Source of the DNA: Octopus bimaculoides
Taxonomy: Eukaryota
Assembly: GCF_001194135.2 (NCBI RefSeq)
Contig: NC_068983.1
Coordinates: forward strand, 142,840,264 to 142,904,263
Reading direction: 5' to 3'
DNA length: 64,000 nucleotides
How positions within the stretch are numbered: the stretch's first letter is position 1; every line of letters starts with the position of its first letter. The notes beneath the pieces are model-generated. The model saw only the letters and a program-made list of their open reading frames with translations, searched no databases and was not told the DNA's origin. The position numbers and the translations under genes are program-made. Shown in pieces: positions 14,579-57,808 of the stretch.

Positions 14579-14609
14579 ATGACTCACTACCAAGTTTTGT
14601 TAGCTACAG
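14579..14609 (+). CDS. WSC-domain gene, putative first coding exon (MTHYQVLLAT + phase 1)
   Basis: ATG at 14579 (gataATGa), open to a consensus donor CAG|GTAAGT at 14609/14610. CpG-containing context, with a possible acceptor ctacttgcag| at 14572. Joined to 31754 and 35059 it gives MTHYQVLLATAVYIQYVLVNS|EKRKQC, which looks like a signal peptide (V at -3, S at -1). The join is inferred from phase and signal-peptide fit only. Confidence 0.5.
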
Positions 14610-15709
14610 GTAAGTTTTATCTGTAACTACTTTTGATGAAAAATTTATACATTAAATATACCATTTAGAATTGAAAGACGCATCCAACTGATGCTCTGCA
14701 GCGGCCAAGAGTCAATTCAGTAGTTAAAAAACAAAGAGAAAAGGAAACAAAGCTTGTTATGTTAGCGTGCCATGTCGAGATGGGATACCTAACACTTCGA
14801 GAAGAACCATTGATCGAACTCTGTATAATTGTTGAATATTCCTGTAAAAAAAAAAAAGAAAGAAAGAAAATCCAGGCGATAACTATATTTTTGTTGATAT
14901 ATTCATGCATTAAAATAATAACCCCTATAAGACTAGTCCTGTTTACTTCACTTGAAAATTAATATTCATAATAATGATTTCAAATTTTGGCACAATGCTT
15001 GGACGTTTGAGAGAGGAGGCTAGTCGTTTACATCGATCCCAGTACTTGACTGGTACTTAATTTATCGATCCCAAAACGTTGAAAGGCAAAATCAACCTTG
15101 GCGGAATTTGAACTCAGAACGTAAAGACGGACGAAATGCCGCTAAGCATTTTGTTCGGCATGCTTAACGGTTCTGCCAGCTCGCCACCTTAGATAATGAT
15201 GATAAACTATCTTTGTTAAACCTCAGATCAGTTCTGATCCAGTAAACAGAAGTATTCCTGTCGATTCAATAGGATGTGACTGGAATGCTTTGTCTATCAG
15301 GTTGAATGATGTCAAATAGTCCTCTTCACTGACAAGAACTTGGTGAACTAATGTTTGGTAAAAGTGGACATAGGAAATCTTGAAGTGAAAGTGTTAATGT
15401 TGGCTCAAGAGATGTATGTATATGTAGACATTAGAATATTTGTTGTGGTAGTGGTGATGCTGTTGTTGCTAATGCAATAATTACTCCTAGGTATCATCTT
15501 CATTAACGTCTATTTTTCCATGCTTGCATGGATCAAACGGAATTTATTTGTGGAACATTTTCTACTGCCTGATATCCTTTCTGTTGCCAACCTTCACCTG
15601 TTTCCAAACAAGGTTAGATGTTCTCATGACCAGACATATTCTTGCAGAATATTGGAAATCAATCTTGTGTGACAGTGACTCTCATTTAAAACTCTCATGC
15701 ATGTCAACG

Positions 15710-15824
15710 CGCGCGCGCGCGCGCACACACACACACACACACACACACACACACACACACACACACACACACACACACACACACACACACACACACACAC
15801 ACACACACACACACACACACACAC
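15710..15824. repeat. (GC)n-(CA)n microsatellite; other SSRs at 21189-21298 (CA), 28521-28555 (TA), 35581-35616 (CAT), 39147-39178 (TA), 50846-50876 (CCAG), 61580-61688 (TACA/CA/TA), 12119-12160 (14-bp unit x3)
   Basis: Directly visible. Confidence 0.95.
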
Positions 15825-55463: not shown

Positions 55464-55594
55464 ATTCTATTGTCTGTGTGGAAATAACACTATAAAAACG
55501 AATCCAACTTCTGATAAACACTGTTCTCTGCGCTGTGCTGGAAATTTGAAACAACATTGTGGTGGTTTTCATCACATTCAGGTTTACAGAACAA
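55464..55594 (+). CDS. WSC domain 2, C-terminal half: FYCLCGNNTIKTNPTSDKHCSLRCAGNLKQHCGGFHHIQVYRT
   Basis: Acceptor ctctactttttag|, donor A|GTAAGG, 131 nt, phase 2-1 (same as 39858-39988). Contains CxCGN...CxxxCxG...CGG...VY. Confidence 0.93.
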
Positions 55595-57766
55595 GTAAGG
55601 TATTTTTCTATTTGATTCTGAAGTGTCCCTATCATAATATACGCACACATGCATATACACACATATATACATACACACACACAGAGCCAGAGAATCAAAT
55701 ATAAAAAGAAAGATGAGACTTGGTACAAATTCTTTAGTTTTATATTCTAAAAAAGTCTTTATAATTAAAAATAATAATACAATAACATAAAATAATTCTA
55801 TACTAAAATTTAATGTAAAGAATGCTTCAAAAATATATTCTGTGTTGAGAGTTGGATATTTTCTTTAGGAATGATTTGTACTATATTGTCATATCCTTCT
55901 TTGTTATTTTAATATCCACATTCTCAAAACCTCAGTGTTTTTGTCTTTTCCTTATTACCTTTCCTTTGGTCTGTTTACCCCACCTTCCCACAATCTGCCA
56001 CATTTTCTTTTATTCCCTGCTATGTAAAAGAAAGGTTTTCAGTATTTTGAGGATCCTCCCAGTTTTCAAAGTATGTTAAGAGGAATGTCAGTGTATCACA
56101 GCATTTGTCTATAGGAGGATTTAAGTTCTGCTCTAGCTAATGATATATTTGCCAGTTAAATAACATGTTGATTGCTTACAGTGTACTTTTGATTGGTAGA
56201 TAGTTGTTGCTTGTTGGATTGATTCATTGAGTTCCTCTTGTCTTTGCAATGGATTCAGTGCAGCTCTTTTCATATCTTTTGAGTTATTAACCTGTCGTTT
56301 AGCACTTGTTAATGCCATTCATCATTAGATGTAGTGCTTGATGCTAATGTAAAAGAAATAAGATGTGATTTGATAGACTGGATATTTTAAATATCATTGG
56401 ACATCAAGTTGATGCTGAAGTCAGAATATTAGAATTGATACCTACTGGGTATTAGGTTCAGGATCTATCATTCTATATTTCAGATTCTGTGCATAACAGA
56501 TTAGTTTTCTGTCTTTTTGAAGTTGAGTAAATAAGGAAATGGAAGGAGCAATTTAACATTGGATATTGAACTGAATGGCACTTGGAATTACAGTTTAGTA
56601 ACCAATTGTAGTTTATAAAATTTTTTGTTTGTTTAAATAAGAAACACATCAAAATGACACATCTTCCATTTTTGAAGGTTGGCAGCAGGAAGTTCATTAA
56701 ACTGTAAAAAAACCTATTCCATTCATAAAACCTTATTAATTCATACATTTTAGAGATTAATGGAGAAACTTATGAAGTAAACAATTTTCTGGATATAGCT
56801 CAAATACGGACAAGGTTCAAGTAAGACCTACACAGAAATTATTGAACACATGTACAGAATGGTGCTGATGACACACACTTATTGCACCCTAAGCCAGTTC
56901 AAAAGAAAATAAAACTGATTGACAATGATTGACTAACAGCCATGCATTACCACTCTTTATCTCTTCCTTCATTTTTCCAATAAGCTCTGCTTTTCTGAAT
57001 TAATAGTATACTCTCTCAAAGTAGGCCCACTTGACTCACGTGTCTCTACTATCATTCTCATTGTGTTCTTATTTAGCAGATATCAAACTAAGAACTTCAT
57101 AGAATCCTTCCTATTCAGAATAGATGTCAGCCTCTAGAATTTCGTCCATGTCCATACTTTCATTACCAGCATTAATCTGAAAATGTTCAAGGTGAACATC
57201 AATTGTATCAAACTCATCAATCTGAGAAGCAATTTAAACTATGAAGAAAAAATTGTCACATCATGCTCAACAATGCCAATCACTTTTTGATAGTGTATAA
57301 TGTTGTCACAGACTGCTGACACATTAAATCTCCAGTGTGTTGGATATGAGATTTGTTCCTTTGCATTTAACTGAGAAATTTGATATGCGCTACTTGATAA
57401 TGACAAAAATTTGCTTCCTTTGAAAATTGTATTGATAAAAACATACACATAACATTTTTCATTTCACTACAAATCCAACTAAATGTAATTGTTTATTTTC
57501 ACTGGCTCAAAACATTATTTTTTAAACTCAAGATAATCCACACTTATAGTTTTTTTGAGTGAATAGTATTCTGATGTCACACTTCAGTTAGCAAACTGAG
57601 CAGTTGCTTCACATTATGAAATCGTCACAGAACAAATCATTTACATCCATTTATTTTATATTAACAATGTCTTTTAAAGCAAAACTGTTGCCATATGTAG
57701 AGGAATTAAAATACTTAAAAATGTTAAATGTGAAGATATTAAAACAAATGTATTAATTTATTACAG

Positions 57767-57808
57767 AAATTGAAAAACCAACAAGGATTCCAGTTTGGGA
57801 TAGAAATA
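57767..57808 (+). CDS. Post-WSC2 linker exon (K)IEKPTRIPVWDRN
   Basis: Acceptor ttaatttattacag|, donor A|GTATGT, 42 nt, phase 1-1, open and in frame with 55594. It could instead be the start of a terminal exon reading through to TGA near 57900. Confidence 0.6.

Follow-up and report, generated by a model that had tools for sequence, protein, structure and literature searches.

Exon structure of LOC106878286

We analyzed a 64,000-nucleotide (nt) stretch of Octopus bimaculoides DNA from contig NC_068983.1, hereafter the window, in which position 1 is the first nucleotide. Positions 14579-57808 of its forward (+) strand are exons 1-9 of LOC106878286, a gene that extends past the window end. The database protein is XP_014782949.1, "uncharacterized protein LOC106878286 [Octopus bimaculoides]", with a length of 584 amino acids (aa). 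An identical 584-aa sequence is held in UniProt as A0A0L8G9U9, "WSC domain-containing protein", and this one sequence is common to NCBI, UniProt, and EukProt. The gene is thus already known from its RefSeq and UniProt entries, and its protein is uncharacterized. LOC106878286 spans a range of 132.6 kb on a 168-Mb chromosome of GCA_001194135.2. Residues 1-268 of XP_014782949.1, the first 46% of the protein, are the exact translation of nine + strand exons, and the two WSC domains encoded by these exons (WSC1 and WSC2) match it at 100% identity. Because XP_014782949.1 was predicted from an assembly of the same species, its identity to the window is no independent proof. Residues 269-584 had no match within the 64-kb window and form three further WSC domains, encoded beyond base 64000.

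A first-pass annotation of the window, read from the raw sequence, had proposed a nine-exon, 268-aa model made up of a signal-like peptide, a two-Cys segment, WSC1, a 12-aa linker, WSC2, and a further linker, and had considered that more exons might lie past base 64000. Comparison with XP_014782949.1 showed the model to be right to the base, and the unmatched C-terminal residues agree with exons past that point. The annotation had also called the gene hidden and its product a tandem-WSC protein. As regards databases the first description does not hold: the exons are absent from the list of open reading frames (ORFs), but the gene is in RefSeq and UniProt. The second covers the window part, which contains two WSC domains, but the full protein has five.

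The N-terminus is assembled from three exons. The coding part of exon 1 (14579-14609, +) starts with ATG, encodes M1-T10 (MTHYQVLLAT) plus 1 nt, and ends at the donor CAG/gtaagt, in exact agreement with residues 1-10. Exon 2 (31754-31786, +; 33 nt, phase 1-1) lies between the acceptor ttatttctag and the donor gtaagt and supplies the rest of the signal-like hydrophobic N-terminus, A11-S21 (AVYIQYVLVNS). Exon 3 (35059-35181, +; 123 nt, phase 1-1) encodes the 41-aa segment E22-D62, which carries two Cys (C27 and C46) and one N-x-S/T site and matched no Pfam family. Both exons match the database protein exactly.

The WSC domains follow. Exon 4 (36396-36534, +; 139 nt) encodes the N-terminal half of WSC1 (YLGCF ... 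YAG; Cys 1-3) and exon 5 (39858-39988, +; 131 nt) its C-terminal half (CYC ... CGG ... IY; Cys 4-8). Exon 6 (47888-47923, +; 36 nt, phase 1-1) is an exact match for the 12-aa WSC1-WSC2 linker H153-K164 (HVYGTGIFLKAK). The two halves of WSC2 are encoded by exon 7 (50012-50150, +; 139 nt) and exon 8 (55464-55594, +; 131 nt), and the gene's last exon inside the window, exon 9 (57767-57808, +; 42 nt, phase 1-1), encodes the 14-aa linker K255-N268 (KIEKPTRIPVWDRN). The four WSC exons have pyrimidine-rich AG acceptors, GTAAGT-like donors, and compatible phases, so that both junctions within the domains, 36534>39858 and 50150>55464, keep the frame. Across all nine exons and 43 kb the frame is open and the splice sites are consensus-like.

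WSC1 and WSC2 are each a 270-nt module of two exons (139 + 131 nt) with phase 1 in and out, and a phase-2 intron splits both at the same codon. From exon 2 to exon 9 (31754-57808), every intron at a domain boundary is phase 1. A two-exon phase 1-1 module is the arrangement expected for domains spread by exon duplication.

None of the four WSC exons is in the ORF list of the window because each encodes only about 45 aa and has no start codon; an ORF track built for prokaryotes hides multi-exon genes composed of short exons. The five non-WSC exons were indistinguishable from chance on sequence alone: the + strand of the window holds 594 open phase-1/1 AG..GT intervals of 30-45 nt, and 53 such intervals of 150-260 nt lie between 14.6 and 36.4 kb. 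The assessment that the start, linker, and last exons were no better than chance was overturned by the exact match to the database protein. A nine-exon model that includes exons of 33-42 nt can therefore be recovered by careful reading of raw eukaryotic sequence.

The two WSC domains of the window

The first-pass annotation had described four exons with canonical splice sites that join into two complete eight-Cys WSC domains, and coordinates, AG/GT sites, and phases all bore this out. The spliced 179-aa peptide scored 98 bits against Pfam WSC (PF01822; gathering score 27.8), with an E-value of 3.7e-28 over two stretches. In both domains the eight Cys occupy unit positions 5, 29, 33, 49, 51, 66, 70, and 78, and a CGG motif occupies positions 78-80. 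These features are those of characterized WSC domains, which have eight Cys in four disulfides, a CGG motif, a PAN/Apple core, and no single binding pocket (PMC9024836). WSC1 and WSC2 align without indels at 30% identity, with 40% identity at third codon positions, which marks the duplication as an old one whose two copies have both retained the scaffold.

We searched the window for further domains. A hidden Markov model (HMM) built from the two domains and run over all six-frame fragments of the window found no WSC exon beyond the four. Pfam scans of + strand stop-free fragments of at least 30 aa (1-49.4 kb and 55-64 kb) revealed no exon for a kringle, CUB, PKD, or sulfotransferase domain; apart from the WSC halves, they returned only weak PHD-like matches located in retroelement debris. 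These scans, together with those of the full protein, agree with the earlier statement that no kringle, PKD, or catalytic domain lies upstream of the WSC domains.

The full-length product

Pfam identified WSC alone in the 584-aa product, in five stretches that together scored 225.8 bits (E 4.9e-68), and found no sulfotransferase, kringle, CUB, PKD, REJ, or GPS domain. A 21-aa signal-like N-terminus comes first, then the 41-aa two-Cys segment, and then the five WSC domains, which are connected by linkers of 9-13 aa. The 42 Cys of the product correspond to 2 + 5 x 8, and there are seven N-x-S/T sites. The N-terminus is signal-like and fits a cleavable signal peptide that would end near S21/E22, between VNS and EKRK. 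By a hydropathy heuristic, no 19-residue stretch of the product reaches transmembrane hydrophobicity, with a Kyte-Doolittle maximum of 1.19 at residues 1-19. The first-pass annotation had considered that the WSC pair might be the N-terminal half of a WSCD-like sulfotransferase or of a receptor. Neither proposal survived, as what follows residue 268 amounts to three further WSC domains, and both a sulfotransferase domain and a transmembrane segment are lacking. The annotation's other suggestion, a lineage-specific secreted glycan-binding protein, remains the best fit.

An AlphaFold2 model of WSC1-linker-WSC2 (mean predicted local distance difference test score, pLDDT, 87.7) contained two separate globular domains joined by the exon 6 linker, which was modeled as disordered with pLDDT below 50. 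Superposition of the modeled domains on the KREMEN1 WSC gave a root-mean-square deviation (rmsd) of 1.6-1.7 A over 91 columns; for the yeast Wsc1 domain, the rmsd was 1.4-1.6 A and the template modeling (TM) score 0.78-0.81. After WSC structures, apple domains were the next structural matches of the model. The predicted fold is thus a PAN/Apple-type WSC fold with a long C-terminal wrapping loop, in agreement with the published WSC fold.

Searches for related proteins

A word-index protein search with the 179-aa spliced peptide returned nothing, and this was a false negative: the search missed XP_014782949.1, which is 100% identical to the query over two 89-aa stretches, but returned it when the full 584 aa were used. 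A negative from the word-index search is therefore no evidence of absence. When the real peptide was aligned with 48 synthetic variants in which conserved-motif words had been changed, four distant matches alone were obtained, at 28-34% identity. A profile was then made from a MAFFT alignment of the four exon translations and two scaffold WSC units from distant matches, and an exhaustive HMMER search with it collected 13,387 proteins at E <= 0.001. Among the best 150 of these, rank depended mostly on how many WSC repeats a protein has, and re-ranking them against the window peptide exposed XP_014782949.1.

P0004 (147 aa, from a 616-bp contig in ENA) contains one WSC domain and begins with a hydrophobic N-terminus. 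Its identity to WSC2 is 34%, and it has the TPFLS motif in common with that domain.

Octopus and bivalve relatives

The Octopus sinensis protein XP_036357263.1 (LOC118762590) is the ortholog, with 584 aa, 91.4% identity, no indel, 42 of 42 Cys conserved, and five WSC domains. The 50 substitutions between the two species reach their highest density in the N-terminal segment and in the exon 6 linker between WSC1 and WSC2, the latter being the least conserved stretch. Differences amount to 7.5% of positions inside the domains versus 12.5% outside them (Fisher p = 0.08).

Besides this octopus pair, the full-length word-index search returned nothing above 28% identity. Among the best 150 of the 13,387 profile matches, the nearest were multi-WSC proteins of Mytilus, Magallana, and Saccostrea, together with one flatworm, one insect, and several fungal proteins, at 24-29% identity. 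The bivalve relatives are Mytilus galloprovincialis XP_076108178.1, Magallana gigas K1QKY9 ("putative fungistatic metabolite") and A0A8W8I6X5, and Saccostrea cucullata XP_062621142.1. All are uncharacterized and, like the octopus protein, consist of tandem arrays (5-10 WSC domains) with little else. The product of LOC106878286 fits what may informally be called the molluscan multi-WSC class, with at least three tandem WSC domains and nothing else. Mytilus XP_076108178.1 differs in that its five WSC units are followed by a C-terminal kringle, which the octopus protein does not have. WSC plus kringle is also the domain pair of Kremen, where it occurs in the reverse order and in a different number.

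Domain-against-domain score matrices between the octopus and bivalve proteins gave no diagonal signal and no one-to-one orthology at the identities involved (at most 29%). Against the octopus units, the five Mytilus units scored nearly alike, a sign that they duplicated recently within the Mytilus protein, whereas the octopus units are old and mutually divergent. Given these patterns and the missing domain-by-domain correspondence, the octopus and bivalve arrays therefore grew independently. Outside the genus Octopus, no relative above 29% identity was found in the collections searched (best 150 of the 13,387 matches), which is weak evidence given that limit and the matches that the word-index search is known to miss. 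We tentatively raise the possibility that the gene encodes an octopus-restricted secreted five-WSC lectin, independent in origin of the bivalve arrays and under purifying selection for specialized extracellular glycan recognition, with mucus, the egg coat, the sucker epithelium, and immunity as conceivable settings; the full combination is doubtful as it stands.

Assembly gaps and repeats

The window is eukaryotic in character, with 34% G+C and a CpG observed/expected ratio of 0.40; it is interrupted by eight runs of N, and (CA)n and (TA)n microsatellites are numerous. Four assembly gaps were flagged for the gene, all of them intronic. Those at 16892-16916 and 20645-21188 are both in intron 1, between exons 1 and 2, and those at 52114-52665 (552 N) and 54249-54258 (10 N) are in intron 7 together with retroelement debris. 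None of the four touches an exon; as they are confined to introns 1 and 7, continuity of the reading frame is not at stake. The O. sinensis ortholog, which comes from a separate assembly and has no indel, argues against a coding exon hidden in a gap.

The 10-N gap falls inside a repeat resembling the 3' end of a long interspersed nuclear element (LINE). Two copies of this repeat are present in sense orientation, at 30717-31538 (+) in intron 1 and 54150-54953 (+) in intron 7; they are 82% identical, and each contains a frame that stays open for 70-185 aa and matches no Pfam family. Since the copy at 30717-31538 runs through the equivalent point with about 10 nt, the 10-N gap is continuous. The gaps at 20645-21188 and 52114-52665 are flanked by (CA)n/(TA)n tracts and are probably repeat-induced assembly breaks and not missing unique sequence. 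Another long (CA)n tract is found near 15.7 kb.

Other retroelement remnants are scattered through the window. Upstream of the gene, an open 247-aa fragment at 4050-4790 (-) matches Pfam RVT_1 (E 1.4e-10) and adjoins a gap at 4919-5882. A 125-aa ORF in intron 7 (51558-51932, +), just left of the 552-N gap, is a retroelement fragment matching Pfam zf-RVT (E 7e-7). The weak PHD-like zinc-finger matches fall in retroelement-like sequence within 25-36.3 kb and 55-64 kb. Dispersed repeats resembling short interspersed nuclear elements (SINEs) are found as pairs with 77-81% identity at 13956-14201 / 61374-61619, a family that ends in a microsatellite tail, and at 7439-7597 / 15006-15164. Similar translated motifs (FQSFDCGH..APPLVE) are found again near 38.6 kb and near 52.9 kb, in both cases on the - strand.

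Proposed function of the five-WSC protein

Together, these data are best explained by exons 1-9 of LOC106878286 encoding the first part of a five-WSC, 584-aa product that would be secreted and would bind glycans multivalently, an explanation in which we have high confidence. The arrangement of the domains and their conservation are shown, whereas secretion and multivalent glycan binding are inferred. The most likely function, by analogy with the fungal protein SiWSC3, is that of a secreted multivalent glycan-binding protein. The protein may enter the secretory route through its signal-like N-terminus and act as a lectin-like binder of extracellular polysaccharides or glycoconjugates, with several low-affinity WSC units cooperating as in SiWSC3.

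Four points weigh against this explanation. The hydrophobic core of the signal-like N-terminus holds Tyr, Gln, and Thr. Both database entries are computer predictions, and a literature search on the gene and protein identifiers found no paper that mentions LOC106878286. Finally, WSC domains can serve in contacts between proteins as well, the KREMEN1-Dkk-LRP6 complex being an example, and glycan binding cannot be taken for granted.

This last point leads to the strongest competing explanation, that the secreted five-WSC protein acts by binding proteins and not glycans; it could, for instance, be a decoy or a scaffold toward a ligand that is itself secreted. The KREMEN1 WSC belongs to a ternary complex of proteins. 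PAN/Apple domains in general engage in contacts of both kinds, and an obvious sugar pocket is absent from WSC domains (PMC9024836). On the other hand, SiWSC3, the WSC-only repeat protein that has been studied, binds beta-glucan through several domains together (PMC9024836, PMC9252488), and tandem repetition is typical of lectins that act by avidity. We regard protein binding as unlikely, while giving it serious weight.

That the locus might instead be a non-expressed or decaying gene model, a prediction artifact or a pseudogene, is improbable. Predicted entries alone, no transcript contig with the exact product on record, and no mention found in the literature would be in keeping with such a locus. 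However, the frame stays open over nine exons and 43 kb with consensus-like splice sites, the O. sinensis ortholog is equal in length with every Cys conserved, and WSC1 and WSC2 keep the full Cys scaffold at only 30% identity, with third codon positions 40% identical.

Membership in a Kremen-type or polycystin/REJ-type membrane receptor is more improbable still. The best solved-structure match of WSC2 is the KREMEN1 WSC, and the Mytilus relative does pair five WSC domains with a kringle, but neither the scanned + strand of the window (1-49.4 kb and 55-64 kb) nor the full protein contains a kringle, CUB, PKD, REJ, or GPS domain, and the 584-aa product has no transmembrane segment. Last, the idea that the WSC pair is the N-terminal half of a WSCD1/2-type Golgi sialate O-sulfotransferase with catalytic exons beyond the window can be set aside almost entirely: although WSCD1/2 also have two WSC domains ahead of the catalytic domain (PMC9304399) and the gene does run past base 64000, the product is WSC-only with no C-terminal sulfotransferase domain bearing PAPS-binding motifs, no such exon was found at 55-64 kb of the window either, the hydropathy heuristic gives no type II membrane anchor near the N-terminus, and reports of WSCD orthologs concern deuterostomes, with echinoderms at one end and vertebrates at the other (PMC9304399).

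Returning to the putative secreted glycan-binding protein, LOC106878286 is one more uncharacterized member of a widespread animal multi-WSC class, and nothing singles out the locus. As an ordinary domain-repeat gene that is already annotated, it has little importance beyond annotation. A ligand is known for no molluscan multi-WSC protein, and much could be learned from binding data on any member of the class.

Comparison with characterized WSC proteins

WSCD1 and WSCD2 resemble the octopus protein in their tandem WSC domains. As enzymes of the Golgi they have type II topology and a sulfotransferase domain (PMC9304399), and the octopus protein has neither feature. The human KREMEN1 WSC (PDB 5FWS) is the best solved relative of WSC2, with 33% identity, a phmmer E-value of 3e-9, and a model rmsd of about 1.7 A. 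In KREMEN1 itself, a kringle precedes the single WSC domain and a CUB domain follows it; the protein is anchored in the membrane and works as part of a protein complex. The octopus protein has no kringle, CUB domain, or membrane anchor. The hallmarks of polycystin-1/REJ proteins (PKD, REJ, GPS, and a multi-pass membrane region) were not found in the 584-aa product by Pfam or hydropathy.

Among lophotrochozoans, glycerotoxin of the bloodworm Glycera, an annelid, is a secreted protein with two adjacent WSC domains (PMC5336659). EGF and CCP domains precede its WSC pair, and a large C-terminal region follows, about 900 aa long and free of known domains (PMC5336659 supplement 3). Its identity to the octopus sequence is only 25%, and Pfam did not find EGF or CCP domains in the 584-aa product.

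SiWSC3 of Serendipita indica is the only WSC-only repeat protein with a tested function found in our literature search. Like the putatively secreted octopus protein, it is secreted and consists of repeated WSC domains only, and it is a beta-1,3-glucan-binding lectin (PMC9024836, PMC9252488), one of the WSC lectins of the fungal matrix (PMC9252488). SiWSC3 is fungal and has three domains, and its ligand need not carry over to the octopus protein. In SiWSC3, beta-glucan is bound jointly by the three WSC repeats, and no pocket is seen in a single domain (PMC9024836); it is this cooperative mode of binding that the five WSC units of LOC106878286 may have in common with it.

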